64,000 nt of DNA from Utricularia gibba (taxonomy: Eukaryota; Plantae; Magnoliophyta). The notes beneath the pieces were generated by a model. The model was not told where the DNA came from. It saw only the letters and a program-made list of their open reading frames with translations, and searched no databases. Positions 6,641 through 61,363 of the stretch are shown piece by piece. Every line of letters starts with the position of its first letter. The first letter of the stretch is position 1. The stretch is taken from assembly GCA_002189035.1 (NCBI GenBank), contig NEEC01000017.1:558001-622000 (forward strand), given 5' to 3'. The translations under genes and the position numbers were made by a program.

Positions 6641-7625
6641 CTACCATCCGCCACCAGCAGCGCCGCCACCTGCGCCAAATCCTCCGCCGATGCCGTGTCC
6701 ATGACCACCGCCTCCACCACCGCCGCCTCCTCCGGCAACGATCCCACCTCCAAGATTTCCAGCGCCACCGAATCCGCCACCTGCCCCAAAGCCACCTCCG
6801 ATACCACCTCCAATTGCTCCTCCGCCGCCGCCACCTCCGGCAGCAACGATCCCACCGTGTCCAACAGACACACCGACGCCGCCACCTTTACCAAAACCAG
6901 CTCCATGGCCACCGATCGCGCCACCACCTCCGGCGCCACCTCCGGCAACGATGCTGCCGCCACCATGTCCATGACTTCCGGCGACTCCAAAGCCACCACC
7001 TTTCCCAATTCCTGCTCCATGGCCACCAATCGCGCCTCCTCCACCAGCACCACCCCGGCGGCGATGCTCCCGCCACCATGGCCATGACTTCCCGAGACAC
7101 CAAATCCACCACCCTTTCCCAATCCTATTCCATGACCCAAAGCGGCACCTCCTCCGGCGCCACCACCTGCGGCAATGCTTCCGCCACCGAGTCCATGACT
7201 CCCAACCGCACCGAATCCACCACCTTTTCCCAATCCTATTCCATGACCAATCGCGCCACCTCCTCCAGCGCCACCGCCCGCAGTGATGCTTCCACCACCA
7301 TGTCCATGACTTCCGGCGGCACCAAAACCACCACCTTTCCCGAACCCACCGCCAAGAATTCCGCCGCCTAGCCTCCACCACCTCCACCCGCAATCCGCCC
7401 ACCACCGCCCTTGATAGGCCCATGATCAGCAGGTACGGAAAAATGGGGTTTAATCTTGGGCACTCCCGGTCTAACAAAGCGACCGCCTATCAGCGGTCCA
7501 TGGATAGGCTTCCGGCCAAAGAAGCCTTTGCCGTATTCACGGCCGTCGTGAACATCTAGAGAAGATGCTGCAATCAAGTTTACAGCCAAGAGAAACAGCA
7601 CCAGAAGCTTCCTTGAAGAACCCAT
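6641..7625 (-). CDS. G1: secreted His/Lys-containing glycine-rich protein (about 328 aa after restoring two 1-bp deletions)
   Basis: Signal peptide MGSSRKLLVLFLLAVNLIAASS from ATG 7625; repeats of GKGGGFGVAGSHGHGGGSIVAGGG; frame breaks at ~7370 and ~7053; stop TAG 6641-6643; TATA-like CTATATA near 7693-7699. Confidence 0.75.
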
Positions 7626-8742
7626 TCTTCTTTCCGTATTGCCCACTTGCAGTTTGCAATCTGCATGGAAGTTTGATCCAAGGAAGCCATGAATATATAG
7701 CGATGCCAATGATGCACCGAGCTAGAGCATTAAAGCATCAACGTGTTGTCATCAAGGGCGGATGGGGCACCAAGTTGCCATAAATGATCTCTCTTGCGGC
7801 TACTAAAACCAGCTACTTCCCATCATTGAGATTGTTTTTAGTGGCATTTAAAACCCCCCACACCATATTCTATATCATTTACTGTCTTCATCTCGAGGTC
7901 AAACTTGGAACATTAATCTGTACTCCATCCCTCAAACTGGGAATAACTCAATAAATCCATCATACTTTTGGTATCACTAATCATGTTCTACTATATGATA
8001 TTGTCAATATCTGATTCTTACAATTTTGGCATTATTTCTTTTTAGAGTAAAATTACTCACTGAAGATTTGAATAGTACTTTTATTTAACCACGTTATCTC
8101 CATTCTTAATTAATGTGGTATATTGTCAAAGTTGGGGGTGTTCTAATCTAACAATGGCTTATGTTTGAGAGTCATGTTTTATTTGATGATATTGCCATTT
8201 GAATAAAATGATCATAATATTTCGTAATTCGTGTACGACTTTATATTGCTGGTTCACATATACTGCGTTAGATTTATTACTATTGGTGCTTAGATTTTTA
8301 TTTTGTAAAATTAGGGCCCTTTTTATTTGATGGATTGCCAATACGTGATGTTAATTAAATGGAATTGCTAGTAGAACATTCGACATCGGTATATTTATTT
8401 TTGGGTAATAAAGTATTTGTAGGAAGCTGTTGTCTGTTTCTAAATTCACACAATAAGTAATGATAAGTGTGATATTATTGGATGCTGCTAAGTCCATTAT
8501 TAGTATGTCACGTGCTATATTATTCGCCACGTGATTAGCAATTAAAGAAAACGCCCCTAATCGCCGCAATAATTATTCTTGCTATTAATTCCCACAATCC
8601 ACCGATGCCGACAGCGGGTTTCATGACAATGCGGTAAAAAAAATTCCGGCGAAAAATAAAAAAGAAATCTGCCTGGAATGTTTGAGATTTAAATTGATTA
8701 GAATTGATTATTGGGTTTGGGATTTTTTGCATCGTGGCATAT

Positions 8743-13431: not shown

Positions 13432-14298
13432 TTAGAAGCCTCCACCGCCGGAGCCGGAGCCGACACCGACGCCTTGTCCGGAGCCGCCTCCCACACCTAT
13501 CCCTACACCGATCCCCACGCCGATGCCCACCCCGCCGCCACCAATTCCACGTCCAACTCCAAATCCGCCGCCTGTGCCTCCCCCGAAACCGGCTCCACCA
13601 CCAAACCCGCTTCCACTACCTCCACCTGCGCCTCCGCCTCCGCCTCCACCGCCGCCACCTCCTCCACCGGCTCCTCCGAAACCTCCACCGGCGCCGAATC
13701 CACTTCCAGAGCCTCCACCTCCGCCACCGCCACCACCACCTCCTCCTCCTCCTCCTCCACCTGCACCGCCGATACCTCCACCGGCACCAAATCCGCTTCC
13801 TTGTCCATATCCTCCTCCGGAACCTCCACCTCCACCGCCGCCACCTCCACCGCCTCCTCCTCCACCGCCTATGCCTCCTCCAGCTCCAAATCCGCTTCCT
13901 TGTCCATATCCTCCTCCACCACCGCCGCCACCACCACCACCTCCTCCTCCGCCGCCTATGCCTCCCCCAGCACCATATCCGCCTCCTTGTCCATATCCTC
14001 CTCGAGGACCTCCACCATCGTCACCATCCCATAGCCGCCCCGGGGGCCTCTATTGTAGCCGTCATCTCGTCCACCCCATCCTCCACGGTACCCACCCAAC
14101 GCCGCCGTCCACCCCAACCTCCACCGTAGCTACCCCAATGCCGCCGTCCGCCCCATCCCGGGCCACGATCATCCCAATCATCACCATCCTCCATTGATCA
14201 GGGCGTATCCCATCTCCCAAACTACAGACACTCAAAGTTAGCCCCACAATGAGAAGTAACGCCAGAGAGCAGATACGTCGCTGTGAGAAACAACCCAT
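13432..14298 (-). CDS. G2: secreted glycine-rich protein with Trp/Asp/Arg/Tyr-rich head (about 289 aa after restoring three 1-bp G deletions)
   Basis: Signal peptide MGCFSQRRICSLALLLIVGLTLSVCSLG; restored head DQWRDGDDWDDRGPGWGGRRHWGSYGGGWGGRRRWGGYRGG; GYGQGSGFG repeats; GVGIGVGIG tail; stop TAA 13432-13434; TATA near 14355. Confidence 0.75.
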
Positions 14299-15299: not shown

Positions 15300-17569
15300 A
15301 TTATGGTAATAAGATATATTATTATCCTAAATGGTCAAAAACACATTGGAGATGGCACAAATTGTGGCATAGATGCGATCTCTCCGGTAAGATGGCCGTA
15401 GAACCCTTTATTTCTACAAGAGCAATCGCCATTTCTTTCCAAAGGTGATATTTGATGTGGTTAAGTCTTTGAGGGTGATAAATTTGGACTTATTAATGGA
15501 ATTTGCACTTCATTTCGAGAGATGGGAGGGGTGAACCCAACCAAAGAAGAAAATCAGTCGACAAGGACGAATCAGTCGTCCCTCCGATGCCTACCAGATG
15601 GAATTTGCACTTCATTTCAATTCACACAGCAAGTGTAGTTTCAAGAGGAAAAAATAGAAGAGAAGACCCTAATACTTTTGGTGGAGACTGGAGATCCTCA
15701 AATCTTGCCTCCGGTCTGGTAAGGATCTGCAAATGAAGAACCTATAGTTATTGCTCTTCCATTTTTCGCATATCATCATTTGAATAATCATTTTTTAGCG
15801 AATAAGTCTTAATCCTTTCCACAGTCGTGTCTTGAAAATCACATGTAGGAATAGGATAACTTAGATCACTATGTAACTTTCCAGATTAGGGTTTATGATA
15901 TGGTTCAACTTACCAACACTTTATTTGTTTTTCGATGATGTGAAGCTTCTTATATTATTACCCAATGAGGAAAGTACACTGTTTGTTGCGATAAGCATCG
16001 TATCAATGTCCTCCGCCGCCACCTGACCCGCTGCCAACTCCGACACCCCGAGCACCACCACCTACGCCTACGCCAACTCCAACACCGACGCCCACTCCTA
16101 CTCCGATCCCATGTCCACCTCCACCGATCCCACCACCGGCACCGGCGCCGATTCCTCCGCCAGCTCCGAATCCGCCGCCACTACCTGCACCGGCACCGAA
16201 TCCACTGCCTTGCCCGAATCCCCCACCTGGGCCTCCACCACCGCTTCCACCTCCGCCACCTCCCCCGGCACCGAATCCCCCACCAGGGCCACCACTTCCG
16301 ACACCTGCACCAAACCCGCTGCCTTGGCCGAATCCTCCACCGGGGCCTCCGCCACCGCTTCCACTTCCGCCTCCTCCGCCGGCACCGAATCCGCCACCAG
16401 GGCCACCACTGCCAACACCTGCACCAAACCCGCTACCTTGACCGAATCCTCCACCCGGGCCTCCACCACCGCTTCCACCTCCGCCTCCTCCCCCGGCCCC
16501 GAATCCTCCACCAGGGCCACCGCTGCCTATTCCTGCACCGAATCCGCTACCTTGCCCGAATCCCCCTCTCGGACCCCCACCGCCGCCCCCACTTCCACCA
16601 CCACCACCAGCTCCAAAGCCACTCCCTGCCCTTCTCCCCCAGTCAGACTGTCCGAAACAGTTTGCACTCAAACTCAGTCCCAGAATTAGAAGGAGCCCCA
16701 GGGCAGATTGCCATCTTCTCGAGAAACCCATTTCCAAACACACTCACTCCACTCCGCTTGCCGATATGCCTCCAAAAGAGAGTTATTTATAGCCCACATC
16801 CGCGACGCAAAAAGATAAGGTAAAAATGGCTTTACTCTCTGGGAAGTAGCATTCAACGAGGCCACATTAGGGATAGTCAACCTGGCCTTCTCCACCAATC
16901 TGAACCCAAGACTCCAAACACAAGAAAAGAATGTGAACGCCGAGAAACTCAGATACAATACATAGATGTAGCGTATTAAATCATTGCCGACATTTTGCAT
17001 ACAACACTCAAGTTGACTTCGCCCACGAATATGTATAGTCAATTTGGCGACTGAATCAAGAAAACTGTCGTTAGTGCAATAAAATATAAAATATCAATAG
17101 GGACTTAAGAGTGTTTTAAAAACCAAATAGCAAATATATGGTACATTTTTTATCACCCCAAAACCCATAGGCATACCTACAATATCTATTAAAACAAATA
17201 AGCTCATATTAAAATTTAAATGTGAAATAATCAAGTATATAAAAATATTAATAATTGAATAAACTTATTTTTCTAATATAATTTATGTTTATTATGTATT
17301 TAAATTTTATATGTATTCGTTTGATTTATCGTATTCTGAATTTCAACAATATACTTAGGTGGATGTAAGCGTTGCGTATCGCACAACGTTCATTTTCAAT
17401 TAGCTTGGGCTAATGTGTGTGTATGACATTTTCTTTACTTCTTCCATGAAGTAAAACACACTTTCGTGTCTCGTAACTTGGTACCACACGTAACCGGTGA
17501 GGAATTCCGGAGGGCTGATTACTGGGCCTTGACGCATTACTCGCTTGAATACAGTTTGAAAGTGAGACG
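15300..17569. repeat. Segmental duplication copy 1 (2.27 kb, contains G3)
   Basis: Colinear with 25023-27396 from ATTATG(G/A)TAATAA to GTGAGACG, including gene, promoter and both flanks. Confidence 0.95.
16003..16731 (-). CDS. G3: intact secreted glycine-rich protein, 242 aa
   Basis: Open frame MGFSRRWQSALGLLLILGLSLSANCFG-QSDWGRR, four GQGSGFG units at 114-bp spacing, (GV)n tail, stop TGA; TATA (CTATAAATA) near 16781-16789. Confidence 0.92.
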   Translation of the reverse strand: MGFSRRWQSALGLLLILGLSLSANCFGQSDWGRRAGSGFGAGGGGGSGGGGGGPRGGFGQGSGFGAGIGSGGPGGGFGAGGGGGGGSGGGGPGGGFGQGSGFGAGVGSGGPGGGFGAGGGGGSGSGGGGPGGGFGQGSGFGAGVGSGGPGGGFGAGGGGGGGSGGGGPGGGFGQGSGFGAGAGSGGGFGAGGGIGAGAGGGIGGGGHGIGVGVGVGVGVGVGVGGGARGVGVGSGSGGGGGH

Positions 17570-17652: not shown

Positions 17653-18272
17653 TGTATTGAGTTTATGTTGCAGATTTGCACAAGAAGAAAGACTGCAAGT
17701 AGTAGGATATATGTATAAAACAGTTATGAGAGATTAAACCGAGTCAGCCATGGATAGTGTGATATGATGATTTCCCTTTTCACGTCAGGCTCACCATAAA
17801 AGCGATATTGAGGGATTTACGGGTATATGAAGTGTGAAGAGCAAGGGCGTGATGAGCATAAGAAATGTTATTTGTCACTTGTAAGTAACTTACATTCTTC
17901 AATGTACATGAGGTATATAGACTCAAAAAATTAGCCGTTACTAAATAGATAATGTATTCTTGCCGTTGTTACCATCATTTTTTTCTAATCCTCTTGCGCA
18001 TAGGTCGGTTGCTTGTTCAGACCTACAAGCTGAGTGAGCATGGACTTGGGTCATCTCCTTGTGTGCCGTCTCCTTAGTATTTGATCCATATTTGCTATAA
18101 GCCCATTTCATGGAATTAGGATCAAAGATGATGAGGCCCATGTCTTTGTTATGTCTTCTCTTTACTTTCTTAGCAGCAGAAGCGTTCCTACGTGATCCCC
18201 TAGAGTTCTCAGTTTCTGCATCAGCTTTATTCTCACACAATTCATTCTTCAATTCATCGTGATCAACCTTCA
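17653..18272 (-). repeat. 3' LTR (about 620 bp), with an extra 87-bp LTR fragment at 17570-17656 beyond its end
   Basis: Begins TGAAGG immediately after the PPT; aligns to 24447-25021 with about 11 mismatches in the first ~200 aligned bases (counted by eye). 17570-17656 duplicates 17798-17883. Confidence 0.85.
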
Positions 18273-18615
18273 TTCCTCCTTGAGGGTGAGGCTGAGGTAA
18301 AATCGCATACTCTGTAGGATTGTGACGTAACCCTAACAATTCCCTAATTTGGGAGAATTGCTTCGAAAATAGGATTTCGTGAGGATGTTTGCGACTTTCT
18401 TCTCTGATGGTAGATACTCTAGCTTGATGCATCCTTATTTGATATAATCTCTCAAAACATGATATTTGATTCTAATATGCTTGGTTTTACCAAACATTAC
18501 CGGATCCTATGTGATGCTTATAGCTCACTTGTTGTCAATCCTTAAGATGAGTGGTCTCTGTATTTTACTTTCAAGTTTTCACATAAGTCATTGAGCATGA
18601 TTAGCAGCGGAAGCT

Positions 18616-19821
18616 TGATGAACGTTAGAATGAGTTGCTAAATGTCGCAGTTTAGCACATTCAACGCATCAAAAGAAATTTATAAACCTAGTTATTCTAC
18701 TACACAAATCACATGAATTAATGTAGTGTGGCAAGTAAGGGTCGAATCCACAAGAAATAGTTGTAATTTCTTGAAGTTCATTGCATTTATTGAAAATAGG
18801 GGGTTTTCTGGGGTTTAGTTCTAACGTGGGTAAGATCTAAAATAACAATAACTGGAATAAACAAGTTGCAGGGGTGAAAAGGGATTAAAATTAAAGTGAA
18901 GGTAGAAAACATAAAATAAAAGTAATTTGGTTGGGTTTTACACCAGAGTCTGGCTCTTGTGTCACTCAAGAGAGCCCATAGGCTTAAACCTAGTTTTGGA
19001 ACGCTTAAAAACAGAGTAATAGTTTGCAGAAACAGAGCATGGTTCGCAGGAACAATAAAAGCGCGTTAAACTTAAAGGCAAACATGAAAAGCTTAATCAA
19101 GAACATGGTTAAACGTAGAAATAAGGTCTACAGAGGATTTATCGCTCACAATAAGGTGCAAGAACATAATAGAAAGCATGTAAACGTTGAAGGAAACAGC
19201 AGCTATTTGTCAACGAAATAGAAGTGCAGAAAATAAAAAATGAAGTGTCTAGCGGTTGCTCTCAGCTATAGATCTGCTGGAAATCAAGTTTCTAGGTGGA
19301 AAGATGGTGTAAACTCGTAGATCTAGAGGTCGCCGGAGAAATGAAGTTTCTCCTTGCTCCCGCTCGCTTCTGTTCGCTTTCTGTGCACTCTGCGTGCACA
19401 GTGTACCCCCGTTTCTCTCTCCCTTCCTTTTTCCCTTTTGGTGCTCAAACGTAAGGGCAGCTTGGTCTTTTACTCAGGCTTCTAGAATGGAGATCCCTTC
19501 TCCATATCTTATCTCTTCAGAAGGGCAGCTACTTTCGGCGGAAAGTGACTTTTGCACAGCTTTTCTGTCTCTTCTGACTTGTCAACGCAGAAAGTGCACT
19601 GCTACAGTACTAGCTCTTACCCTGGTAAGACTTAAAACATAGACTAGACAAAATATTAGAGTTTTCGGCTCAATTGTTGCCAATTGAGACTGTTTTCACA
19701 ATAAACATATCTCAACAGTCTAAATATGCAAAAGAAGACATTTTAGCACCCTAAGCAACATTTAACCCTACAAAACACACTTAAAAACATATATAAAAAC
19801 ACAATTAAAACGGTGTTATCA
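18616..19821 (-). mobile_element. Solo LTR (1206 bp), Gypsy/Athila-like, inserted in the copia RNase H
   Basis: Termini TGATGAAC...GTGTTATCA; perfect 5-bp TSD AAGCT at 18611-18615 and 19822-19826; RNase H rejoins across it (EAEYVAG/ASAANHAQ). The Athila call rests on the TGATAAC terminus and a GGGTCGAATCCAC motif and is inference. Confidence 0.9.
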
Positions 19822-22453
19822 AAGCTCCCGCAACATATTCGGCTTCAGGAGAGGATTGAGCCACTAAATCTTTTTTCCTGTTGTTCCAGCAAACGCTGCT
19901 GAACCTAAGGTAAATAGGTACCCGGTAGTGGATCTTAAATCCATTTCATCCCCTATGAAATCAGAATCTACAAACCTTTCGAGAATAGGGTTAGTATGCT
20001 TTTGAAAGTAAAGACCTAAAGATTTTGTGGAGTTCAAGTATCTGAAAATCTGTCTGGCGATTTTGAGATGCAGGGTGAGGGGTCTGTGCATGAAGCGAGA
20101 CAAGAACGTTACCACAAAGGTGATATCATGTCGGGTTGTCGTAAGATATCATAGGGCTCCAACGATTTTCTGATATTCATGCATATTTTCAGCATTAGCT
20201 TCATCAGTTTGGTCGTGAGACTTATTTGAATGTTCTTTCTTTGACAACAGATTTGCTTTGAGCTTCAGGTACAGTGTGAACGGAGTGGCTGCCTCACTGA
20301 CGTGCATCATGTCATATCTGGTGAGTATGTCTTCAGTGTATTTTTGTTGGCTGAGGAACATATAGTCTTTGGATTGTATGATTTCTAGACCAAGGATATA
20401 CTGTGCCAGACCCAAGTCTGATAGATCAAATCATTCTTTGAGTTTTAGCTTTTGCTCCAAAATCATGGTTTCATTGTCTCCTGTAAGTAGAATGTCATCC
20501 ACATAGAAAGTGACAATGATTCTGCCAATATTAGACTCAAGTATGTATAATGTAGTATCATTTTGCTGTGTTGATAGCCAAGTTGTGTGAAATATTCATC
20601 AATTGTGGCATACCATTCCTTAGGCACTTGTTTGGGACCATATAAGGCCTTTTGAAGTTTGAGTACCTTGTGATCTCCATTTTTCATAGTGAAGCCAGGA
20701 TGTGGGAGTACATAGACATCTTCCTTTAGGGTCCCGTTTAGGAAGGCGTTTTTTACATCCAAATGATATAAGTTCCATCCTTGGCTAGCGGCATATGCGA
20801 TGACTCACTTGATGGTGTCTAATTTGGCCACCGGTGAAGGTATCCCAATAGTCAAGTCCCTCCTTTTGGAGATACCCCTTCGCAACTAACCATGATTTTA
20901 GTTTATTCATAGTGCCATCAGGATTGAGTTTGATCCTATATACCCATTTGAGGCCAATAGGCTTGACGTGAGCAGGTTTGTCCACCACTATCCATACTTG
21001 ATGTTTTTCAATAGCAGTTAACTCATTTTCCATGGACTCTTTCCATGCAGGATTTCGCAAGGCTTCATAAGGGCCTAGAGGTTCATGCATGAGGATACCT
21101 CGATCATAAATTTCATGAAGGGAGTCATACCCTCTGACAAGTTCCTCATCTAGATTTTGATCGGGGTTGTTGGATTGGAAATGAGGTATGTAACTGTCTT
21201 TCCCTGTTTCAAGTGCAAAACTGATGTCTGGTTCAGAGTTGTTTGAAGAATGCCTTGATGGTGAATGATCTTGGATTCTCATTGAATGCGTATTATTCTC
21301 GTTTTCCTCCTGAGTAGTTGTATCTTTAGATTCATAACTAGTGCTGTCATTGATATCGTCAGAGGAATTTTGCAGAATCTCATTGAGAGAATTGAGGTTT
21401 GGCTCCTGCTAGTATAAGTGACTATCTCGTTGTAGAACCTCATGTGTTGCTGTGCCTCCAATATTATCTGCCTCGATATTATCTTCATGATTAGTGACAT
21501 CAGTATCATGTTGTGCCTCCAGGATGCCAAAGAAGTCTTGACCTATGGGAAATCTAGATATTTCATCTGGAAATAATAAGTTTATTTGTTGATGATATAT
21601 GGATGAAGAGGTCTCTAGTGTCTGTTGCTTGGTTTCCCAGTCAAAGAATCGAGAATCATCCACAACTACATCAATACTTCGTTGGGTGACAATCCGGTTG
21701 ATGGTAGGAACATATATCCTATATATTTGGGGTACTTTCAGAGTATCCCAAGAAAATTCCAATCTGTGAATGATTTTCTAGTTTAGTCCTTTGCTCCTTT
21801 GAGATGAATACATAGCTCAAGGATCCAAATACTTTCAAGTGTTCCAAATTCGGTGCACTACCATACCACATTTCATATGGGGTTTTTCCTCCAGGTACAC
21901 CTTTGGTAGGCAGGCGGTTGAGGAGAAAAATAAAAGTATGAACAGCTTCTCTCCAGAAGTGATGGGTAACTTATGATCTAGCATGAGGCATCGAGCCATG
22001 TTCATAATAGTTCGGTTTTTTCGTTCACTGATGCCATTCTGTTATGGAGTGTAGGGAACGTTGAAGCGATGCACAATACCATTCTCGGTGCAGAGGTTCT
22101 CTATATCCTTTGACTTGTATTCCTCACCATTGTCGGTATGAAGAGTAATAATCTTAATGTTGCTTTGAGTCTCTGCTAGCACCTTGAAGGTCTTGAAATA
22201 ATTCGTTGCTTTAGATTTATGTTTGAGGAAATAGGCCCAAGTGTACTTGGAAGAATCTTCTGTGAAAATGATATAGTACCTGTTTCCTCCTAGTGTGTTG
22301 ACACGCATAGGACCACAAATGTCGCTGGTGACCAGCTGAAGTTTTGCCTCTGATATTGCTGGTCTTCGTTTAAACAAACTCCTGCTCATTTTTCCTAGCA
22401 AGCAGGTGCTGCAAGGCTCAAAGCATGGGTGCAGTTCGGGTATGCCTGATATT

Positions 22454-23012
22454 TAGGGATGAAAGTTAAAGTCAAGCCCATGGACCGGCCCGGCCTGGCC
22501 CTAAAAAACATCGGGCTAGGGCCTATACATTAATGACCTGAAAGATTGTCGGGCTTTTTAGCCTGAAGCCCTAAGCCCTAAGGGCTGATTGGGCTTCAGG
22601 CCTTAAAGCCCGACGAGCCTAGGGTCAATTTAAAAATAGAATTTTTATATATAATAATTATAATTATTTTTAATTTTGAATAATTTAAATTCATTTTATA
22701 TATACTATTTTATTTTAAATATAAATAATTTGAATTAATAATTTATATAATAATTTTAAATTTTTTTCTATAAATTATTTAAATAATATTAAAATATATA
22801 TTAATGTTTACTATTTTTAAAAAAAATTTTATTGATTATATGGTAAGCCCGTGGGCCGGATAAGGCCAGCCCGACCCTATGAATAATCAGGCTAGGGCCA
22901 CGTTAATCTTATTTTTATGTGATCGGGCTTTAGCCTGACCCTAGCCCGAAACTTAGCGAGGCCCTCTGAAATAGGGTTGGCCTAGCCCGGCCTTACCCAA
23001 CTTTCATCTCTA
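22454..23012. mobile_element. Non-autonomous hAT element / MITE (559 bp) nested in the copia pre-integrase region
   Basis: 14-bp TIRs TAGGGATGAAAGTT / AACTTTCATCTCTA (1 mismatch); 8-bp TSD CTGATATT (22446-22453) / CTGATACT (23013-23020); GGGCC/GGCCC-rich subterminal repeats around an AT-rich core. Confidence 0.92.
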
Positions 23013-24446
23013 CTGATACTGTACCCTGAGATTTTGTTTTTACTACTGCAGTATCTGGAACTACAAAACTGAGTAGCTCGTTAGTGTGAAGACAATTAAC
23101 AGGAAAGAGTCGATTTACCATTTGAACTTTGAACACAAGGTTTTGATTGTGATCAATCAGCATGCAAGTACAGTCTTCCAGGTGTATCTTGTATCTTTTT
23201 TCGATGAATTGACTAGCACTTAATAGATTGTGTGATGCACCAGGGACATAGAAGACCTCAATGAGCTTGAGAAGGCACTAGTTAGTTTCAATACATACTG
23301 ACCCAATCCCATGAACAGAGATGGATGTTCCATCGGCAATAAGCAAGGTTTTCCCAGATATTGTTGTATAGGAAGTAAATATCAACAGTTCATTTGTTAG
23401 GTGGTTGCTGCAAGCACAATCCATAAGCCGGGTGACTTTATGCCTACGGTCTTTTATTTCTGTTAGTATAGATTTGCTGCATATCGAGTAGATAGGAATT
23501 TTTGGAGTCTTATTTGCGTCATCAATGGATACATCTTGTAGTTTGGCTAGAACGTTTTCAACGTTAGCAGTGGATGTATGAGAGTTCTTGCTTGGTTGAT
23601 TTTTCTTGGTAGGGCAGACTCTCCACATGACCTTTGGTGGAGCACAAGGTGCAATATGCTTATGGATTCCAATAGCAGCTGACCGGAGGATGATTCTTCT
23701 GAGCACAGTATGGGCAAGGTGAAAAGGCCCTTTTTTTCCTTCTTTGCATGTTGGAAGGTGGGAGCAGAATATGGTAGGTAACTTCCCTCATATCTTGGCA
23801 GGTTTGAGGTAAGTGTTGCCTTGAAAGCCTTGTCTTGAGCTTCTTCTTCGTTCCTGCTCTTTCTTCGGCTCTCCACATTTTTGAGATGGTTTAACAATTG
23901 CTGCAGAGTTAAGGTTTCGAGAAACCCAGTGGCATCGAGCGATTCGATTTCAGTGTCAAACTCTGTTGGGGCACTGTGGATGACATGTGCTTTTAACTTC
24001 TGTTCTTCATGGTTGTCGACAACTTCGCCTAACCGTTTTAACTTCTCCAGGTTTTTCAGAAGTTGCTCAGCACTGGATGCGACCTTGCCATCTCTAATCC
24101 GAAAGTTGTAAACTTGGTTCCACATGAGTTGAATTTCCCGCTTTCTGACTTCCTTTTTTTCTTCATATAAATCTTGTAGTGTTAACTAGGCTTCTTTTGA
24201 TGATTTTTTTGTGATGCATCGATAGGTATCACCCATGACAGTACACACTAACACTGCTGAAGTTTGGATTTCCTTCTCCAGATATGCATGTTCAACAGCA
24301 GCTTTTTCTTTGGTTGTGCCTTCGAAGTGAGGATTTGAAACTATGAAGTTCCGCAGTCCATGTAACCGTAGGTAAATCTCCATTTTAGGAGCCCAGATGT
24401 CGTACTCCTTTCCATCAAATATGGGTGGAGAGATGTTTGTAACCGA

Positions 24447-25021
24447 TGTATTTGAGTTCATGTTGCAGATCTTCACAAGAAGAAAGACTGCAAGCAGTAG
24501 GATATATGTATAAAACAGTTGTGAGAGATCAAACCGAGTCAGCCATGAATAGTGTGATATGATGCTTTCCCTTTTCATGTCGGGTTCACCATAAAAGCGA
24601 TATTGAGGGATTTACGGGTATATGAAGTGTGAAGAGCAAGGGCGTGATAAGCATAAGAAATGTTATTTGTCACTTGTAAGTAACTTACATTCTTCAATGT
24701 ACATGAGGTATTTATAGGCTCAAAAAATTAGCTGTTACTAAATAATGATGTATTCTAGCCATTGTTACCATCATTGTTTTATGATCCTCTTGCGCATAGG
24801 TCGGTTGCTTGTTCAGACCTACAAGCTAAGTGAGCATGGACTTGGGCATCTCCTTGCATGCCGTCTCCTTAGTATTTGATCCATATTTTCTCTAAGTCCA
24901 TTTCATGGAATTAGGATCAAAGATGATGAGGCCCATGTCTCTATTATGTCTTATCTTCACTTTCTTAGCAGTAGCAGCGTTCCTCGCGATCCCTTAGAGT
25001 TCTCGACTTCTACATCAGCTT
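24447..25021 (-). repeat. 5' LTR, missing its outer ~45 bp
   Basis: Homologous to 17653-18227; homology stops at 25021 where duplicated host sequence begins. Confidence 0.85.
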
Positions 25022-25022
25022 G

Positions 25023-27396
25023 ATTATGATAATAACATATATTATTATCCATAATAGTCAAAAACACATTGGAGATGTCACAAATTGTGGCATAGATCCG
25101 ATACCTCCGGAAAGATGGCAGTAGAAACCTTATTTTTTACTAGAGAAATCGCCATTTCTTTCCAAAGGTGATAGATGTTGTGGGAAAGTTTTTGAGGGTG
25201 ATAAAGTTGGCAACGTTGATGGAATTTGCACCAGCCATTTCGAGAGATAAGATGGGAGAGGTGAACCGAACCAAAGAAGGAAAAAAGATCAGTCAACGAA
25301 GGACGAACCAGTCGTCACTCCGATACCTACCAGATGGAATGATCAGGCAGATGCCTTCCGAGGCAAAACGTTGTTTTCAAGACCTTTTGTTATTTTCAGT
25401 TCACACAGCAAGTGTAGTTTCAAGATGAAGAAATAGAAGAGAATAGCCTTATACCTTTGGTAAAGACTGGAGATCCTCAAATCATGCCTCCGGGTCTGGA
25501 AAAGATCTGCAAATGAAGCAGCTATAGTTATTGCTCTTCCATCTTTCCGATATCATCATTTGAATAATCATTTTTTTAGCATATCAGTCGAATCCTTTCA
25601 ACAATCGTGTCTTGAAAATCTCATGCAGGAATAGAAAATCTTAGAACACTATGTAGCTTTCCAGATTCCGAGTTCAGGAGTAAATCTCATTATTATTCTT
25701 CTACTTATTTAACTTCATGTCTGTTTTATTCGACATAATACAGATTAGGGTTTATGATATGGTACAATTTATCAACACTTTTAATTGTTTCTCGATGATG
25801 TGAAGCTTCTTATATTATTACCCAATGAGGAAAGTACACTGTTTGTTGGAATAAAACATCGTATCAATGTCCTCCGCCACACCTGATCCGCTGCCAACTC
25901 CGACACCCCGAGCACCACCACCTACGCCTACGCCAACTCCGACACCGACGCCCACTCCTACTCCGATCCCATGTCCACCTCCACCGATCCCACCACCGCA
26001 CCGGCGCCGATTCCTCCGCCGGCTCCGAATCCGCCGCCACTACCTGCACCGGCACCGAATCCACTGCCTTGCCCGAATCCCCCACCTGGGCCTCCACCAC
26101 CGCTTCCACCTCCGCCACCTCCACCGGCACCGAATCCACCACCAGGGCCGCCACTGCCGACTCCTGCACCAAACCCGCTGCCTTGGCCGAATCCTCCACC
26201 GGGGCCTCCACCACCGCTTCCACCTCCGCCTCCTCCGCCGGCACCGAATCCGCCACCAGGGCCACCACTGCCAACACCTGCACCAAACCCGCTACCTTGA
26301 CCGAATCCTCCACCCGGGCCTCCACCACCGCTTCCACCTCCGCCTCCTCCCCCGGCCCCGAATCCTCCACCAGGGCCACCGCTGCCTATTCCTGCACCGA
26401 ATCCGCTACCTTGCCCGAATCCCCCTCTCGGACCCCCACCGCCCCCCACTTCCACCACCACCACCAGCTCCAAAGCCACTCCCTGCCCTTCTCCCCAGTC
26501 AGACTGTCCGAAACAGTTTGCACTCAAACTCAGTCCCAGAATTAGAAGGAGCCCCAGGGCAGATTGCCATCTTCTCGAGAAACCCATTTCCAAACACACT
26601 CACTCCACTCCGCTTGCCGATATGCCTCCAAAAGAGAGTTATTTATAGCCCACATCCGCGACGCAAAAAGATAAGGTAAAAATGGCTTTACTCTCTGGGA
26701 AGTAGCATTCAACGAGGCCACATTAGGATAGTCAACCTGGCCTTCTCCACCAATCTGAACCCAAGACTTCAAACACAAAAAAGAATGTGAATGCCGAGAA
26801 ACTCAGATACATACATATGTGTAGCGTATTAAATCATTGCCGACATTTTGTATACAACACTCAAGTTGACTTCGCCGCGGAATATGTATAGTCAATTTGG
26901 ACTATATAAAAAATTCGTTAGTGCAATAAATATAAAATATCAATAGGACTTAGAGTGTTTTAAAAAAACCAAATAGCAAACATATGGTACATTTTTTATC
27001 ACCCCGAAAACCCATCGTCATCCCTCCAATATCTATTAAAATAAATAATTTTATATTAAAATTTAAAAGTGAAATAATAAAATATACAAAAATTAATAAA
27101 TGATTAAATCTATTTTTCAATGATTCATATTTTTTGTGTTTTTAGATTTCATGTGTGTTCATTGGATGTATTACATCCTGAATTTTAACAATATACTCAG
27201 GGGTAGTTGGATGTAAACGTTGTGTATTGCACGATGTTCATTATTCAATTAGCTTAGGCTAATGAATGCGTATGACATCTTCTTTATTTCTTCCATGAAG
27301 TAAAACATACTTTCGTCTCTTATAACCCGATTCCGGAGGGCTGATTACCGGGGCCATGACGCATTCCACGCTTGAATAGAGTTTGGAAGTGAGACG
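25023..27396. repeat. Segmental duplication copy 2 (2.37 kb, contains G4)
   Basis: Colinear with 15300-17569; has an extra 79 bp bounded by CAGATT repeats (25662-25667 and 25741-25746). Confidence 0.95.
25864..26587 (-). CDS. G4: near-identical paralog of G3, 5 bp shorter through four small deletions (frameshifted as assembled)
   Basis: Same signal peptide; 724 nt versus 729 nt for G3; deletions at ~26495, ~26445 (2 bp), ~25998 and ~25878. Confidence 0.6.
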
Positions 27397-28383: not shown

Positions 28384-29122
28384 TTACGGCGAGGCTGTGT
28401 CCAAGTTGCTGCCACCGGATCCACTGCCAAATCCAACGCCGGTAGCTCCTCCCGATCCCGCACCGATGCCTACGCCAACTCCGACACCAATTCCAACCCC
28501 GATTCCCCCGAAACCTCCGCCTACTCCCCCGCCGCCTCCGGCGCCGATGCCGCTACCAGAACCAGTACCTACTCCTGCACCGAATCCGCTGCCTTGTCCG
28601 AATCCTCCACCGGGGCCTCCGCCACCGCTTCCACTTCCACCTCCTCCGCCGGCGCCAAACCCTCCACCAGGACCACCACTGCCGATGCCACCACCGAAGC
28701 CGCTACCTTGTCCGAATCCTCCTCCTGGGCCTCCACCACCGCTTCCACCTCCACCTCCTCCGCCCGCGCCAAACCCTCCACCAGGACCACCACTGCCGAT
28801 GCCGCCCCGAATCCGCTTCCTTGCCCGAACCCTCCACCTGGACCCCACCGCCGCTTCCGCCTCCTCCTCCTCCACCGGCGCCAAATCCTCCACCGGGACC
28901 ACCACTACCCACACCTGCGCCAAATCCACTACCTTGTCCGAATCCCCCACCAGGGCCTCCGAATCCACCTCCACTTCCGCCACCACCGCCAGCTCCAAAG
29001 CCGCCGCCTCCCCTCCTTCCACCCCACCGTTCATCCCTCCAATCAGGCTGTCCAAAACAACTCACACTCAAGCTCAGCCCAAGCATTACAAGGAAGACCA
29101 AAGCTTTTCTTGAGAACCCCAT
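28384..29122 (-). CDS. G5: secreted glycine-rich protein (about 246 aa after restoring two 1-bp deletions)
   Basis: MGFSRKALVFLVMLGLSLSVSCFG-QPDWRDERWGGRR; breaks at ~28843 and ~28805 in G runs; (GV/GI)n tail; ends GSNLDTASP-stop. Confidence 0.72.
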
Positions 29123-30996: not shown

Positions 30997-31029
30997 AGAG
31001 ACACACTCGTAAAGTCAAATTTATCTGCT

Positions 31030-37995: not shown

Positions 37996-38555
37996 TCAGC
38001 CCGAACCGCCAATTCCCGCACCGAATCCACTACCTTGTCCGAACCCACCTGTAAAGCCTCCACCTCCGCTTCCACCACCGCCACCTCCTCCCGCACCGAT
38101 CGCACCACCAGGACCGCCGATGCCTACACCTGCACCAAATCCGCTACCTTGCCCAAACCCCCCTCCGGGACCTCCACCACCGCTTCCACCGCCGCCGCCT
38201 CCTCCAGCACCAATCCCACCACCTGGACCGCCGATCCCTACGCCACCACCGAATCCGCTACCTTGCCCAAACCCTCCTCCGGGACCCCCACCACCGCTTC
38301 CACCGCCGCCGCCTCCCCCGGCACCAAAACCTCCACCGGGACCACTACTGCCTACACCAGCACCGAATCCGCTGCCCTGTCCGAATCCCCCACCGGGGCC
38401 TCCGAATCCGCCTCCACTTCCACCACCACCACCAGCTCCAAAGCCACCCCCTGCCCTTCTCCCCCAATCAGACTGTCCAAAACAGTTTGCACTCAAACTC
38501 AGACCCAGAATTAGAAGAACCCCAGAGCAGATTGCCATCTCCTCGAGTAACCCAT
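37996..38555 (-). CDS. G10: type A glycine-rich protein (186 aa after restoring 1 bp in the signal-peptide codons)
   Basis: ATG GGT TAC TCG AGG AGA TGG as in G12 and G17; TTCCTTCTA reads TTCTTCTA at ~38517; the remainder is open to GIGGSG-stop. Confidence 0.72.
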
Positions 38556-40622: not shown

Positions 40623-41432
40623 TCAATTTGAACCCCCGATTCCGGCACCAAATCCACTGGCTTGCACAAATGTGCCTCGGAAGTCCCCACTTCCACTTCC
40701 ACCGCCGCCGCCTCCTCCGGCACCGATCGCACCACCAGGACCACCGATCCCTACTCCAGCACCAAACCCACTGCCTTGCCCAAATCCCCCACCAGGAAAT
40801 CCACCTCCACTTCCACCGCCGCCTCCTCCTCCGGCACCGATCGCACCACCAGGACCTCCTAGTCCAACACCTGCACCAAACCCGCTGCCTTGTCCAAATC
40901 CTCCCCCAGGGCCACCACCTCCACTTCCACCACCCCCACCTCCTCCGGCACCGATTCCACCACCTGGACCGCCGGTCCCAATACCAGCACCGAATCCGCT
41001 TCCCTGCCCGAACCCCCCACCGGGACCTCCACCTCCACTTCCACCACCCCCGCCTCCTCCGGCACCGATTCCACCACCTGGGCCGCCGGTCCCAATACCA
41101 GCACCGAATCCGCTTCCCTGCCCGAACCCCCCACCGGGACCTCCACCTCCACTTCCACCACCGCCACCTCCTCCAGCACCTATTCCACCTCCAGGACCAC
41201 CACTACCAATACCACCACCGAATCCGCTACCTTGCCCGAATCCCCCACCAGGGCCTCTGAACACCCCTCCACTTCCGCCACCGCCGGCAGCTCCAAAGCC
41301 ACTTCCTACCCTCCTTGTACCCCATCCGTAACCCCCCCTCCATTCAGATTGAGCAGAAGAAATTGCACTCCAGCTCAGCCCCAGAATTAGAAGCAAACCC
41401 AATGCAGAAATCCTTTTCTGTGAGAACCCCAT
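40623..41432 (-). CDS. G11: intact type B secreted glycine-rich protein, 269 aa
   Basis: MGFSQKRISALGLLLILGLSWSAISSA-QSEWRGGYGWGTRR; five GQGS units plus one degenerate unit; ends GIGGSN-stop; TATA CTATAAATATA near 41480-41490. Confidence 0.92.
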   Translation of the reverse strand: MGFSQKRISALGLLLILGLSWSAISSAQSEWRGGYGWGTRRVGSGFGAAGGGGSGGVFRGPGGGFGQGSGFGGGIGSGGPGGGIGAGGGGGGGSGGGGPGGGFGQGSGFGAGIGTGGPGGGIGAGGGGGGGSGGGGPGGGFGQGSGFGAGIGTGGPGGGIGAGGGGGGGSGGGGPGGGFGQGSGFGAGVGLGGPGGAIGAGGGGGGGSGGGFPGGGFGQGSGFGAGVGIGGPGGAIGAGGGGGGGSGSGDFRGTFVQASGFGAGIGGSN

Positions 41433-46175: not shown

Positions 46176-46849
46176 TCAACCCGAACCGCCAATTCCGGCC
46201 CCGAATCCACTACCTTGTCCGAACCCACCTCTAAAGCCTCCACCTCCACTTCCACCACCGCCGCCTCCTCCTGCACCGATCGCACCCCCACGACCGCCTA
46301 TGCCTACACCCGCGCCAAATCCGCTACCTTGCCCAAATCCTCCACCGGGACCTCCACCACCGCTTCCACCGCCACCGCCTCCTCCAGCACCGATCCCACC
46401 ACCTGGACCGCCGATGCCTACGCCACCACCGAATCCGCTACCTTGTCCAAATCCTCCTCCGGGACCTCCACCACCGCTTCCACCGCCGCCGCCTCCTCCG
46501 GCACCGATTCCACCACCTGGACCACCACTACCTATTCCACCACCGAATCCGCTACCTTGCCCAAACCCCCTCCGGGGCCTCCACCACCACTTCCTCCGCC
46601 GCCTCCTCCACCGGCACCGAAACCTCCACCGGGGCCACCACTTCCTATACCAGCACCGAATCCGCTGCCCTGTCCGAACCCCCCACCGGGGCCTCCGAAT
46701 CCACCTCCACTTCCACCACCACCACCAGCTCCAAAGCCACCTCCTGCCCTTCTTCCCCAATCAGACTGTCCAAAACAGTTTGCACTCAAACTCAGACCCA
46801 GAATTAGAAGGAACCCCAGAGCAGATTGCCATCTCCTCGAGTAACCCAT
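46176..46849 (-). CDS. G12: type A glycine-rich protein (224 aa after restoring one 1-bp deletion)
   Basis: MGYSRRWQSALGFLLILGLSLSANCFG-QSDWGRR; break in a G run at ~46568; one more 38-aa unit than the other A copies. Confidence 0.72.
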
Positions 46850-48263: not shown

Positions 48264-48844
48264 TCAATTTGAACCCCCGATTCCGGCACCGAATCCGCTG
48301 ACTTGCACAAATGTGCCTCGAAAGTCCCCACCTCCACTTCCACTGCCGCCGCCTCCTCCGGCACCGATCGCACCACCAGGACCGCCTATCCCTACGCCAG
48401 CACCGAACCCACTGCCTTGTCCAAATCCCCCACCAGGAAATCCACCTCCGATTCCACCGCCGCCTCCTCCTCCGGCACCGATCGAACCACCAGGACCTCC
48501 GTTTCCAACACCTGCACCGAATCCACTTCCTTGCCCAAACCCCCCACCGAGACCTCCACCTCCACTCCCGCACCGCCGCCTCCTCCGACACCTATTCCTC
48601 CTCCTGGACCACCACTACCTATACCACCACCGAATCCGCTACCTTGGCCGAAGCCCCCACCAGGGCCACTGAACACGCCTCCACTTCCACCACCAGCAGC
48701 AGCTCCAAAGCCGCTTCCTACCCTCCTTGAACCCCATCCGTAGCCACCCCTCCACTCATATTGAGCAGAACAAATTGCACTCCAGCTCAGCCCCAGAATC
48801 AGAAGCAAACCCAATGCAGAAACCCTTTTCTGTGAGAACCCCAT
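48264..48844 (-). CDS. G13: type B glycine-rich protein (193 aa after restoring one 1-bp deletion)
   Basis: MGFSQKRVSALGLLLILGLSWSAICSA-QYEWRGGYGWGSRR; break at ~48570; 581 nt versus 582 nt for intact G18. Confidence 0.72.
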
Positions 48845-51190: not shown

Positions 51191-51748
51191 TCAACCCGAA
51201 CCGCCAATTCCCGCACCGAATCCACTACCTTGTCCGAAACCACCTGTAAGGCCTCCACCTCCACTTCCACCACCGCCGCCTCCTCCTGCACCGATCGCAC
51301 CACCAGCACCGCCGATGCCTACACCTGCACCAAATCCGCTACCTTGCCCGAATCCTCCTCCGGGACCCCACCACCGCTTCCACCCCGCCGCCTCCTCCAG
51401 CACCAAAACCTCCACCGGGACCACCACTACCGATACCACCACCGAATCCGCTACCTTGCCCAAACCCCCTCCGGGGCCTCCACCACCGCTTCCACCGCCG
51501 CCGCCTCCCCCGGCACCGAAATCTCCACCGGGACCACCACTACCTACACCACCACCGAATCCACTGCCCTGTCCGAATCCCCCACCGGGGCCTCCGAATC
51601 CACCTCCACTTCCACCACCACCACCAGCTCCGAAGCCACCTCCTGCCCTTCTCCCCCAGTCAGACTGTGCAAAACAGTTTGCGCTAAAACTCAGCCCCAG
51701 AATTAGAAGGAACCCCAGAGCCGATTGCCATCTCCTCGAGTAACTCAT
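51191..51748 (-). CDS. G14: type A glycine-rich protein; open as 185 aa only because three 1-bp deletions compensate
   Basis: MSYSRRWQSALGFLLILG; the middle reads off-frame (GLGKVADSVVV...GWKRWWG) and then returns to the Gly frame; 558 + 3 = 561 nt like the other A copies. Confidence 0.72.
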   Translation of the reverse strand: MSYSRRWQSALGFLLILGLSFSANCFAQSDWGRRAGGGFGAGGGGGSGGGFGGPGGGFGQGSGFGGGVGSGGPGGDFGAGGGGGGGSGGGGPGGGLGKVADSVVVSVVVVPVEVLVLEEAAGWKRWWGPGGGFGQGSGFGAGVGIGGAGGAIGAGGGGGGGSGGGGLTGGFGQGSGFGAGIGGSG

Positions 51749-53720: not shown

Positions 53721-53940
53721 TCAATTTGAACACCCGATTCCGGCATCAAATCCACTCACTTGCACAAAGTCCCTATCTCCACCGCCGCCGCCTCCACCGG
53801 CACAGATCGCACCACCAGGACCGCCGATACCTACTCCAGCACGAAACCACTGCCTTGCCCAAATCCCCCACCAGGAAATCCACCTCCACTTCCACCGACG
53901 CCTCCTCCTCCAGCACAAATCGCACCACCAGGACCTCCTT
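53721..53940 (-). pseudogene. G15: decayed, 5'-truncated type B fragment
   Basis: C-terminal B-type sequence (FVQVSGFDAGIGCSN-stop) with indels and substitutions; joined at ~53940 to spacer homologous to 44425 onward. Confidence 0.85.
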
Positions 53941-56108: not shown

Positions 56109-56667
56109 TCAGCCCGAACCGCCAATTCCGGCCCCGAATCCACTACCTTGTCCGAAACCACCTGTAAAGCCTCCACCTCCACTTCCACCACCGCCGCCTC
56201 CTCCCGCACCGATCGCACCACCAGCACCGCCGATGCCTACACCTGCACCAAATCCGCTACCTTGTCCAAATCCTCCTCCGGGACCTCCACCACCGCTTCC
56301 ACCGCCGCCGCCTCCTCCGGCACCAATCCCACCACCTGGACCGCCGATCCCTACGCCACCACCGAATCCGCTACCTTGCCCAAACCCTCCTCCGGGACCC
56401 CCACCACCGCTTCCACCGCCGCCGCCTCCCCGGCACCGAAACCTCCACCGGGACCACCACTACCTATACCAGCACCGAATCCGCTGCCCTGTCCGAACCC
56501 CCCACCGGGGCCTCCGAATCCACCTCCACTTCCACCACCACCACCAGCTCCAAAGCCACCTCCTGCCCTTCTTCCCCAATCAGACTGTCCAAAACAGTTT
56601 GCACTCAAACTCAGACCCAGAATTAGAAGGAACCCAGAGCAGATTGCCATCTCCTCGAGTAACCCAT
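56109..56667 (-). CDS. G16: type A glycine-rich protein (186 aa after restoring two 1-bp deletions)
   Basis: ATG 56667; G-run deletions at ~56634 (signal peptide) and ~56428; 559 + 2 = 561 nt. Confidence 0.7.
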
Positions 56668-58700: not shown

Positions 58701-59260
58701 TCAGCCCGAACCGCCAATTCCGGCCCCGAATCCACTACCTTGTCCGAAACCACCTGTAAAGCCTCCACCTCCACTTCCACCACCGCCGCCTCCTCCCGCA
58801 CCGATCGCACCACCAGCACCGCCGATGCCTACACCTGCACCAAATCCGCTACCTTGTCCAAACCCTCCTCCGGGACCCCCACCACCGCTTCCACCCCACC
58901 GCCTCCTCCGGCACCAAAACCTCCACCGGGACCACCACTACCGATACCACCACCGAATCCGCTACCTTGCCCAAACCCCCCTCCTGGACCCCCACCACCG
59001 CTTCCACCGCCGCCCCCTCCCCCGGCACCGAAACCTCCACCGGGACCACCGCTACCTACACCAGCACCGAATCCGCTGCCCTGTCCGAATCCCCCACCGG
59101 GGCCTCCGAATCCACCTCCACTTCCACCACCACCACCAGCTCCAAAGCCACCTCCTGCCCTTCTCCCCCAATCAGACTGTCCAAAACAGTTTGCACTCAA
59201 ACTCAGCCCCAGAATTAGAAGGAACCCCAGAGCAGATTGCCATCTCGTCGAGTAACCCAT
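58701..59260 (-). CDS. G17: type A glycine-rich protein (186 aa after restoring one 1-bp deletion)
   Basis: MGYSTRWQSALGFLLILG; break in a G run at ~58897; 560 + 1 = 561 nt. Confidence 0.72.
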
Positions 59261-59392: not shown

Positions 59393-60781
59393 ACACTACA
59401 CTCTCAAAGTCAAGCAACTGTTCCCATCCATTTTTCTCCCATTTCACATGGAAAAATAGAATGTGAAATGTGGACTCACTTCATCTCCCCAATCATCATA
59501 CTGCTGAAATACTCTAATTCATTTTTTTTTATCAATCAAATGGAGTTGTCAAATTTTATACTATCGAAAGCATGGAGAAGGAAACGCGACCGACATGATT
59601 TTGTGGGGATTCTTATGCACCATTTTTTCTTTTTTCTTTTTTTTTGCAGATATCTTATATATATAAATATAAGTCATAAAAAAATCTCATCTACCACTTA
59701 ATGAATAGGAGATAGAGTATATGTTGTTTTTTGATGATGATATTGTTGATTTTTCGAAAATGGGAACATGTTGATACAATAAAGTAGTGATAATTTGATA
59801 GCGTGTAGTTATGTATATTATTTTAATTAATGCTTAATAAATTATAATTGAATATATTCTTATTAAAAAAATACTACATTATAAAATAAAAGTAGAATTG
59901 TCAATTATATAAAAGATTATGGTTTACTATTAGTTGATTGAATTTAATCTTTTTTAATATGATTTATATTTTTGTATATTTAAACTTCACGTGTACTAGA
60001 CCGACTCATCGAATCCTTAATTTCAAATTAATATTAGAGTATTTGCCTTGCAGTATAGCTCATGCAGTCAAGATGGATTTGTGCTTGTCTAATTTCTAAT
60101 TAAAAAAAGAACAAGAATATGTATTGGACTTAGAGTGGGTATTAAAATAAATTTAATCGATTTATTACCTGAGTATTATTTACAATTATACAAAAAAACA
60201 AGTATTAACCAAATCAAAGATTAATTCGACTTAAGAGTGGGTATTAGAATGAACACCATCATATCGAAATATGAAAATATAATAATCAATTATATAAAAA
60301 TTATATATCATTAGTAATTAATTAAGTTTAATTTTTTTTAATGTGATCCATATTTCTTGTATATTTGGCTTCATATTTTCTCATTCAATATATCATATCC
60401 TTAATTTCAACAATTCTAACGTATATTTATGCATCAGAATCCCTGTGTTTGTGAACTCAAATCGTGTCAAGTTTGGATCCAATGAATACCAATTACAATA
60501 AATATCTCTCCCCGTAGGGAAGGATCAATGATTTATTACAGATGAAACGCTTTTTTATATGTCGTAGATGGGCACAAATTATGTTTAGTTAATCTCAATA
60601 CTGTTCTATTTTGTGTTGTACGGCAAATGATAGATGAAGTTGCATAAAACTCTTGGGCAATTCTTAGGCGTAGAACAGGCTCATCGTCCATGACTAGGGA
60701 TCATTAACACAAGCAAAATGGCGCATCACAAACATACAGTGTGCATTACATGGTATGACCATCTTTCGCGACTAAAGTGAC

Positions 60782-61363
60782 TCAATTTGAACCCTCGATT
60801 CCGGCACCGAATCCACTGACCTGAACAAATGTGCCTCGGAAGTCACCACCTCCACTTCCACCGCCGCCGCCTCCTCCGGCACCGATCGCACCACCAGGAC
60901 CGCCGATACCTACGCCAGCACCAAACCCACTGCCTTGTCCAAATCCCCCAACAGGAAATCCACCTCCGATTCCACCGCCGCCTCCTCCTCCGGCACCGAT
61001 CGCACCACCAGGACCTCCGCTTCCAACACCTGCACCGAATCCGCTTCCTTGCCCGAACCCCCACCCGAGACCTCCACCTCCACTCCCGCCACCGCCGCCT
61101 CCTCCGGCACCTATTCCTCCTCCTGGACCACCACTACCGATACCACCACCGAATCCGCTGCCCTGGCCGAATCCCCCACCAGGGCCACTGAACACGCCTC
61201 CACTTCCACCAGCAGCAGCAGCTCCAAAGCCGCTTCCTACCCTCCTTGAACCCCATCCGTAACCCCCTCTCCACTCATATTGAGCAGAACAAATCACACT
61301 CCAACTCAGCCCCAGAATTAGAAGCAAACCCAATGCAGAAACCCTTTTCGGTGAGAACCCCAT
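60782..61363 (-). CDS. G18: intact type B secreted glycine-rich protein, 193 aa
   Basis: MGFSPKRVSALGLLLILGLSWSVICSA-QYEWRGGYGWGSRR; open to GIEGSN-stop. Confidence 0.9.
   Translation of the reverse strand: MGFSPKRVSALGLLLILGLSWSVICSAQYEWRGGYGWGSRRVGSGFGAAAAGGSGGVFSGPGGGFGQGSGFGGGIGSGGPGGGIGAGGGGGGGSGGGGLGWGFGQGSGFGAGVGSGGPGGAIGAGGGGGGGIGGGFPVGGFGQGSGFGAGVGIGGPGGAIGAGGGGGGGSGGGDFRGTFVQVSGFGAGIEGSN

Follow-up and report, generated by a model that had tools for sequence, protein, structure and literature searches.

A tandem array of intronless genes for putatively secreted glycine-rich proteins in the carnivorous plant Utricularia gibba

Clusters of genes for secreted glycine-rich proteins (GRPs) are familiar in plants, and the proteins themselves are sorted by the motifs that they repeat. 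In the scheme of Mangeon et al. 2010, as given in PMC5852109, class I is comprised of (GGX)n proteins, while class V is defined by a signal peptide followed by mixed GGX and GXGX motifs. Here we describe an array of 18 glycine-rich loci, designated G1 to G18, in a 64,000-nucleotide stretch of the genome of Utricularia gibba (assembly GCA_002189035.1, contig NEEC01000017.1, positions 558,001 to 622,000 of the forward strand). This whole stretch is called the window, and all coordinates are positions within it. The intronless genes of this locus, which encode predicted secreted glycine-rich proteins, form a genuine family that was amplified locally, and thus a known kind of plant cluster; the array in itself is unsurprising, although, given how very compact the genome is, it is large. 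In our overall reading, to which we assign a probability of about 0.65, it is a real tandem family under purifying selection, with a shared promoter, that would deliver a co-regulated, high-dosage protein to the wall or apoplast, and most of the breaks seen in its reading frames are assembly errors.

The array proteins share with class I members such as bean GRP1.8 and petunia GRP1 a signal peptide and a very glycine-rich, repetitive mature part, and the first-pass annotation had placed them among the class I cell-wall GRPs. This assignment had to be abandoned: instead of (GGX)n, the repeat mixes GXGX (GFGQGSGFGAGVGSG), which makes up half of each unit, with GGX and poly-G, the tail is (GV)n, and Phe takes the place of Tyr as aromatic residue. 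Class V provides a better fit. In G2-G18 a region with a Gly content above 60% comes after the signal peptide and mixes GGX (GGP, GGS, GGG) with GXGX (GFGQGSGFGAGVGSG and the (GV)n tail), and G1 also mixes both; class V is, however, a description and not a homology group, and the regular 38-residue unit and the 16+2 copies set the array apart from it. The Cys-rich C-terminal domain of class II is missing, as the mature proteins contain no Cys. Another comparable group is the Pfam GRP family PF07172 (stress-induced GRPs, nodulins 16 and 24), which likewise includes small secreted glycine-rich proteins that often lie in tandem arrays. The array represents a separate family: none of the six proteins searched, namely G3, G10, G11, G18 and the N-terminal open reading frames (ORFs) of G1 and G8, reached the gathering score of PF07172 or matched any other Pfam family at E values up to 1.

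Insolubilisation through Tyr has been proposed for wall proteins of the bean GRP1.8 type. It cannot apply to the array proteins, since Tyr accounts for 0% of the mature sequence in most copies and for 0.3-3.1% only in G1, G2, G8 and the genes of the B-type group defined below. The predicted mature proteins are 131-325 residues long. Gly makes up 54-66% of them in G2-G18 and 52% in G1, and Phe accounts for 6-8% in G3-G18. Charge is nearly absent, most of the proteins having two to five basic residues and G1, G2 and G8 up to 15. On this composition they are expected to be flexible, disordered and not covalently cross-linked, and to be sent to the wall or apoplast.

The loci were located by ORF listing, a search for the LGLS motif, BLAST with one locus, and tracking of glycine-rich reading frames, and the four methods agree on 18 loci, all on the minus strand, between 6641 and 61363. 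The one-orientation cluster of 18 paralogs for secreted proteins reported in the first-pass annotation is thereby upheld, as is the absence of introns: in frame-tolerant models built from each ATG, 16 loci (G1-G6, G8-G14, G16-G18) are full-length genes that read through a signal peptide and glycine-rich repeats to a stop without interruption by an intron. The remaining two are partial copies. G7 (32756..33138, minus strand) is the 3' half of G8, without ATG, signal peptide or promoter, and derives from a tandem duplication of 989 bp that took in this half and its flank (32195-33128 versus 33184-34093, 97% identity). G15 (53763..53938, minus strand) is a B-type remnant of about 60 codons that has lost its 5' part.

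The full-length proteins are laid out as a signal peptide of about 24-27 residues that would be cleaved off, a short QSDWGRR-type or a longer Trp/Tyr/Arg-rich head, and three to seven copies of a 38-residue unit composed of GPGGGFGQGSGFGAGVGSG and GPGGGFGAGGGGGGGSGGG, to which the left-hand genes add a (GV)n tail. According to Tandem Repeats Finder, 13 of the G3-G18 loci have a repeat period of 114 nt (38 residues) with a half period of 57 nt. In G1 (6917-7341) the period is 111 nt and the units of 37-38 residues stay near this length; in G2 (13733-14005) it is 87 nt, corresponding to 29-residue units, and the 38-residue period is not kept. The core G[FYI]G[QK]G[SG]GFG was found across the modelled loci and ties G1 and G2 to the others at the level of the repeat. 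Glycine is encoded with all four third bases (GGT 752, GGA 696, GGC 404, GGG 203), a variety which indicates that the repeats are no simple DNA satellite but are maintained as protein sequence.

Signal peptides, judged by rules for the n-, h- and c-regions and for positions -3 and -1, are predicted for all 16 full-length genes, so that secretion of the products appears likely. Of the 16 genes, all but G8 and G9, which have none, carry one or two basic residues in the n-region; the h-region reaches a mean Kyte-Doolittle value of 2.3-3.6 across nine residues, and small residues occupy -3 and -1. Cleavage would fall after about residue 23-28, and the alignment places it ahead of a conserved Gln or Asp, as in ANCFG|QSDW and AICSA|QYEW. 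The LGLS-type signal peptide, formerly attributed to all members, is confined to 14 genes, with a variant (IVGLTLS) in G2 and an unrelated peptide in G1.

On the plus strand, long proline-rich ORFs (PPPPAPNPPPGP...) span every locus. The Gly frame and the Pro frame antisense to it have their wobble positions in common, and the pattern of substitutions is hence compatible with either. We therefore considered whether the loci encode proline-rich proteins instead. The plus-strand ORFs, however, start at non-homologous GTG, TTG or ATG codons, lack a signal peptide and end inside the minus-strand head region, whereas at every locus the minus strand offers an ATG that is preceded by a TATA box at about 60 nt and followed in frame by a signal peptide, and a stop conserved within the subfamily. 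Since the conserved ATG, signal peptide, TATA box and stop are confined to the minus strand, coding was assigned to it, and the proline-rich alternative was rejected as having next to no chance of being correct.

Alignment of the upstream regions revealed a promoter of about 170 bp, common to 14 to 15 of the genes, whose blocks lie in otherwise diverged sequence (positions relative to the ATG). TATAAAT occurs at -57 to -66 in 14 of the 16 genes, with TATAAGT in G9 and TATATAT at -74 in G1, and a conserved 5' leader between the TATA box and the ATG is common to G2-G18. Further upstream, the footprints comprise a proximal TTGAC(C) at -83 to -100 (11 genes), CATTTAATG at -125 to -136 (seven genes, with near variants in others) and a distal TTGAC(T) at -109 to -173 (13 genes). 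The core promoter of G3 (16732..16980, minus strand) is an example, with TATAAAT at -60 and TTGACT at -149, to which other copies add CATTTAATG and the proximal TTGACC; it is 96-100% identical to that of G4 (100% from about 16878), while the flanks farther out are 78-88% identical. The common promoter proposed in the first-pass annotation thus extends over G2-G18, including G2, which keeps the common layout; for G1, where the resemblance is faint, it is doubtful. Conservation of these putative elements suggests that the copies may be co-regulated, in which case the array would amplify dosage in a single cell type or under a single condition. The candidate palindrome TCATTTAATGC fits 10 of the 11 positions of GCATT(A/T)AATGC, the preferred site of class IV homeodomain-leucine zipper (HD-Zip IV) factors, which is linked to epidermal L1 expression (PMC3645734). 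This site hints at epidermis or gland cells as the place of expression.

At the right-hand end of the array, an element with 80-nt terminal inverted repeats (89% complementary) occupies 61517-62192 and contains a Pfam IRX15/IRX15L/GXM fragment (E 3.9e-11), in agreement with a Pack-MULE at this place. About 154 bp separate it from the ATG of G18, which lies downstream of it. Beyond about -140 the upstream sequence of G18 ceases to resemble the promoters of the other genes, with TCTGAC in place of the distal TTGAC.

The relationships among the copies were established from identity over -200 to +96 and a maximum-likelihood tree. An A-type group (G10, G12, G14, G16, G17) shows 89-100% identity within the group, and a B-type group (G11, G13, G18) 84-95%. 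The left-hand pair G3/G4 is 98% identical and sister to the A-type, G5, G6, G8 and G9 are intermediate with 57-71% identity to others, and G2 (about 50%) and G1 (about 45%) are outliers. A fall in divergence from left to right, as described earlier, can be recognised roughly, with higher values on the left; G3 and G4, however, are near-identical to each other at the left and group with the right-hand A-type genes.

The gradient is only approximate because gene conversion homogenises the promoter and the 5' coding sequence. Between G3 and G4 there are zero substitutions over 16878-16379, compared with 78-88% identity in the flanks, and G12 and G16 are 100% identical over 47186-46687, compared with 80-93%. 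Such sharp plateaus over promoter and 5' coding sequence, set in flanks of 78-93% identity, are the mark of gene conversion. The duplication units measure 0.7-2.4 kb.

The ratio of nonsynonymous to synonymous substitution rates (dN/dS) is 0.06-0.22 in 17 pairs, broken copies included, as estimated from a protein-guided alignment of the repeats, which favours low dN; the proportion of synonymous differences (pS) rises to 0.64, and that of nonsynonymous differences (pN) does not exceed 0.13. The reading frame is under purifying selection in most copies, as in a functional family.

In the assembled sequence, the frame stays open between the family ATG and the stop only in G3, G11 and G18. About 26 frame breaks, overlooked in the first-pass annotation and nearly all of them losses of one base in short runs of G or C, are spread over the remaining 13 of the 16 full-length genes. 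If these were real mutations, the array would be mostly a graveyard, with protein encoded only by G3, G11, G18 and perhaps, through an alternative ATG, G10; the number of genes out of frame, the true fragments G7 and G15, and the fact that homopolymer slippage is the commonest natural indel would all be in keeping with this. Several properties of the breaks speak against it. Single-base insertions are absent from the roughly 26 events, and in the aligned A-type genes and in G3 versus G4 every break is a deletion (11 of one base, one of two bases). Most deletions affect runs of G or C (GGGG, GGGGG, CCC), the in-frame paralogues having one base more at these places, and the same contexts recur between genes (GGCGGGGTGGAAGC, GGTGGGGTCC, GCCGGGGAGG, GGAGGGGGTTTGGG and GGCCCGG). 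Some lie inside tracts in which the paralogues show no substitution at all: G4 misses three bases within its tract shared with G3, and G16 misses one base, in its signal-peptide part, within the tract in which it is otherwise identical to G12. The break common to G12 and G14 contradicts the tree, in which G12 is the sister of G16, and tracks a six-G-run allele. Finally, dN/dS is equally low in broken and unbroken copies, the broken A-type pairs (0.06-0.13) not exceeding the intact G11/G18 pair (0.19). On the strength of the deletion-only bias, the zero-substitution tracts, the conflict with the tree and the low dN/dS, most breaks in the 13 genes are probably single-base assembly errors and not signs of pseudogenes, and we regard a largely dead array as improbable.

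In G10 (38513-38555) and G16 (56629-56667), one-base losses at different places of the signal-peptide part bring an internal ATG (MAICSG...) in frame; starting there, G10 can still be read through as one ORF, whose leader is shorter and without charge. Errors of the assembly have probably produced this by chance. Two frame switches recorded in G5, at 29047 and 29025, were dismissed as scoring artefacts of the frame tracking, as the original ORF reads straight through the head.

Several points weigh against the overall reading. Third positions of the Gly frame coincide with the antisense Pro frame, and dN/dS by itself cannot fix the coding strand; the lean of the repeat alignment, given above, belongs here as well. 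Homopolymers are also favoured by natural slippage, so that some breaks may be real; the lesion near 33911 in G8 is a larger deletion and may be a real one; and G7 and G15 are truly partial. With Tyr, Cys and Lys lacking, the proteins have no obvious wall anchor. In the protein atlas, the clusters closest to the array are those of Streptophyta named "glycine-rich cell wall structural protein 1-like" (score 0.91), which speaks for the overall reading, but with a low recognition value (1526) the match is weak.

The main functional rival is that the array encodes secreted defence or antimicrobial glycine-rich polypeptides, induced by WRKY factors, and not structural wall parts. TTGAC is the core of the W-box bound by WRKY factors, and two footprints with this core are conserved in most of the promoters; a five-base core motif is, however, a weak sign of WRKY control. 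Tandem arrays with fast turnover are typical of defence genes, and the mature proteins, slightly basic and without cross-linking residues, would stay soluble. GRPs with antibacterial and antifungal activity are also on record (PMC5852109). The array proteins differ from the known glycine-rich antimicrobial peptides in being long, nearly uncharged, with few basic residues in most cases, and neither strongly cationic nor amphipathic. We consider a defence role unlikely, and favour a function in the wall or apoplast, in which the array may serve as a high-dosage system of structural secretion.

The relationship of the array to other proteins was scrutinized by searches of very large protein libraries, which returned no relative of its signal peptide and head: segments comprising residues 1-44 of G3 and residues 1-62 of the B-type had no match even at E values up to 10. 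A profile of 11 signal-peptide and head segments gave one match among 1.84 billion representatives (E 1.8e-4), which was discarded as spurious because it involved a Cys/Ser/Leu-rich repetitive protein, aligned only at positions 10-26 of 48 and in eight separate stretches. With the whole G3 protein, a word/HMMER search scored 8000 candidates and found 0 significant, a result in which composition correction probably hides glycine-rich matches. The G1 head, submitted to the protein atlas, obtained a best score of 0.75, which is uninformative. Exact patterns (the signal-peptide DNA and back-translated GFGQGSGFGAG) were not found in metagenome contigs, and the literature yielded no relevant report on the repeat motif, on Utricularia glycine-rich proteins or on tandem GRPs of U. 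gibba. An exact look-up of six array ORFs in the protein collection also failed, and this lack of self-matches suggests that this plant's proteome is missing from the searched libraries. The family had been called lineage-specific; the want of close relatives in such libraries agrees with that status and lends it slight support, but is not proof.

The individual genes, all on the minus strand, differ mainly in head, tail and number of breaks. In G1 (6641..7625) the signal peptide (MGSSRKLL...) is peculiar to the gene; a non-Gly head of 60 residues and repeats that contain His and Lys follow it, and there are two frame breaks. G2 (13432..14298) begins with MGCFSQRR, has a Trp/Arg/Asp/Tyr-rich head, in which its three frame breaks lie, and ends in a (GV/GI)n tail. 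G3 (16003..16731) is 242 codons long, with four repeats of 38 residues ahead of a (GV)n tail, and its near-twin G4 (25864..26587) differs from it by four deletions (1, 2, 1 and 1 nt). Two frame breaks each were recorded for G5 (28384..29122), of the (GV/GI)n-tail type, and G6 (30199..30871), of the (GV)n-tail type. The longest gene, G8 (33731..34788), has about 352 codons, a G2-like Tyr/Trp/Arg-rich head and a (GV)n tail, and carries two one-base breaks besides its larger deletion, while G9 (36392..36861) is short (156 codons) with one frame break.

Among the A-type genes, G10 (37996..38555) has a single one-base loss, in the signal-peptide coding part, behind which the out-of-frame ATG mentioned above leaves the ORF open to the stop; G12 (46176..46849) has one frame break, where a run of six G is read as five; G14 (51191..51748), starting with ATG AGT, has three one-base losses; G16 (56109..56667) has two, one of them in the signal-peptide part; and G17 (58701..59260) has one frame break. 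Of the B-type, G11 (40623..41432; 269 codons, five 38-residue repeats) and G18 (60782..61363; 193 codons) are uninterrupted, and G13 (48264..48844) has one frame break.

The transposon debris noted previously between the array genes was confirmed as pieces of Ty1-copia elements; the accompanying claim that the region has no other host genes was checked only at the level of ORF-by-ORF Pfam scans. A Ty1-copia long terminal repeat (LTR) retrotransposon at 17653..25025 (minus strand), with 580-bp LTRs that are 92% identical and with gag, beta-barrel, integrase and reverse transcriptase pieces in several broken frames, separates the duplication units of G3 and G4, and the divergence of its LTRs is similar to that of the G3/G4 flanks. 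A Ty1-copia remnant at the left edge of the window (30-2444) retains reverse transcriptase, SH3-like, beta-barrel and gag-pre-integrase pieces. Between G13 and G14, an ORF at 49664-50329 resembles copia RNase H by eye and has no Pfam match, and the G11-G12 spacer contains a perfect tandem repeat (42236-42500) of three 88-bp units that are 100% identical.

From these features, a history can be proposed in which the array would have grown by tandem duplication of units of 1-2.5 kb, with retrotransposons inserted between the units later. Homogeneity of the promoter and of the 5' coding part is maintained by gene conversion, the number of repeats changes in steps of 114 nt, and the coding frame is under purifying selection. 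Most likely, the array would provide a particular cell type with much flexible, non-cross-linked, secreted glycine-rich protein for its wall or apoplast.

A more specific role can be imagined in the suction traps of Utricularia gibba, in which elastic energy is stored and released in the walls and door. Spider flagelliform silk contains GPGGX motifs and abductin a GGFGGMGGGX repeat; the array proteins resemble both in their recurrent GPGGG(F/I)G and GGFG, in having Phe as the main aromatic residue and in lacking cross-linking residues in the repeats. The likeness is one of composition and motif, without homology, and is in line with only a speculative proposal. From the Tyr-free and Cys-free, Phe-spaced repeats with these motifs, the epidermis-type HD-Zip IV site and the elasticity of the trap, one might conceive of the array as supplying, at amplified dosage, the walls of trap or gland cells with an elastic protein, a plant elastomer that evolved independently of the animal ones, which we consider a very long shot.

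What the present analysis adds is a set of corrected gene models, the evidence of gene conversion and the promoter footprints. Uncorrected, the one-base losses would cause 13 of the 16 full-length genes to be mis-annotated as pseudogenes or truncated proteins. The clear concerted evolution, together with the footprinted promoter, makes the array a tidy case for the upkeep of dosage arrays of repetitive secreted proteins, and the footprints and the Tyr-free, Phe-rich repeat give rise to concrete hypotheses on expression and material properties in a carnivorous plant.

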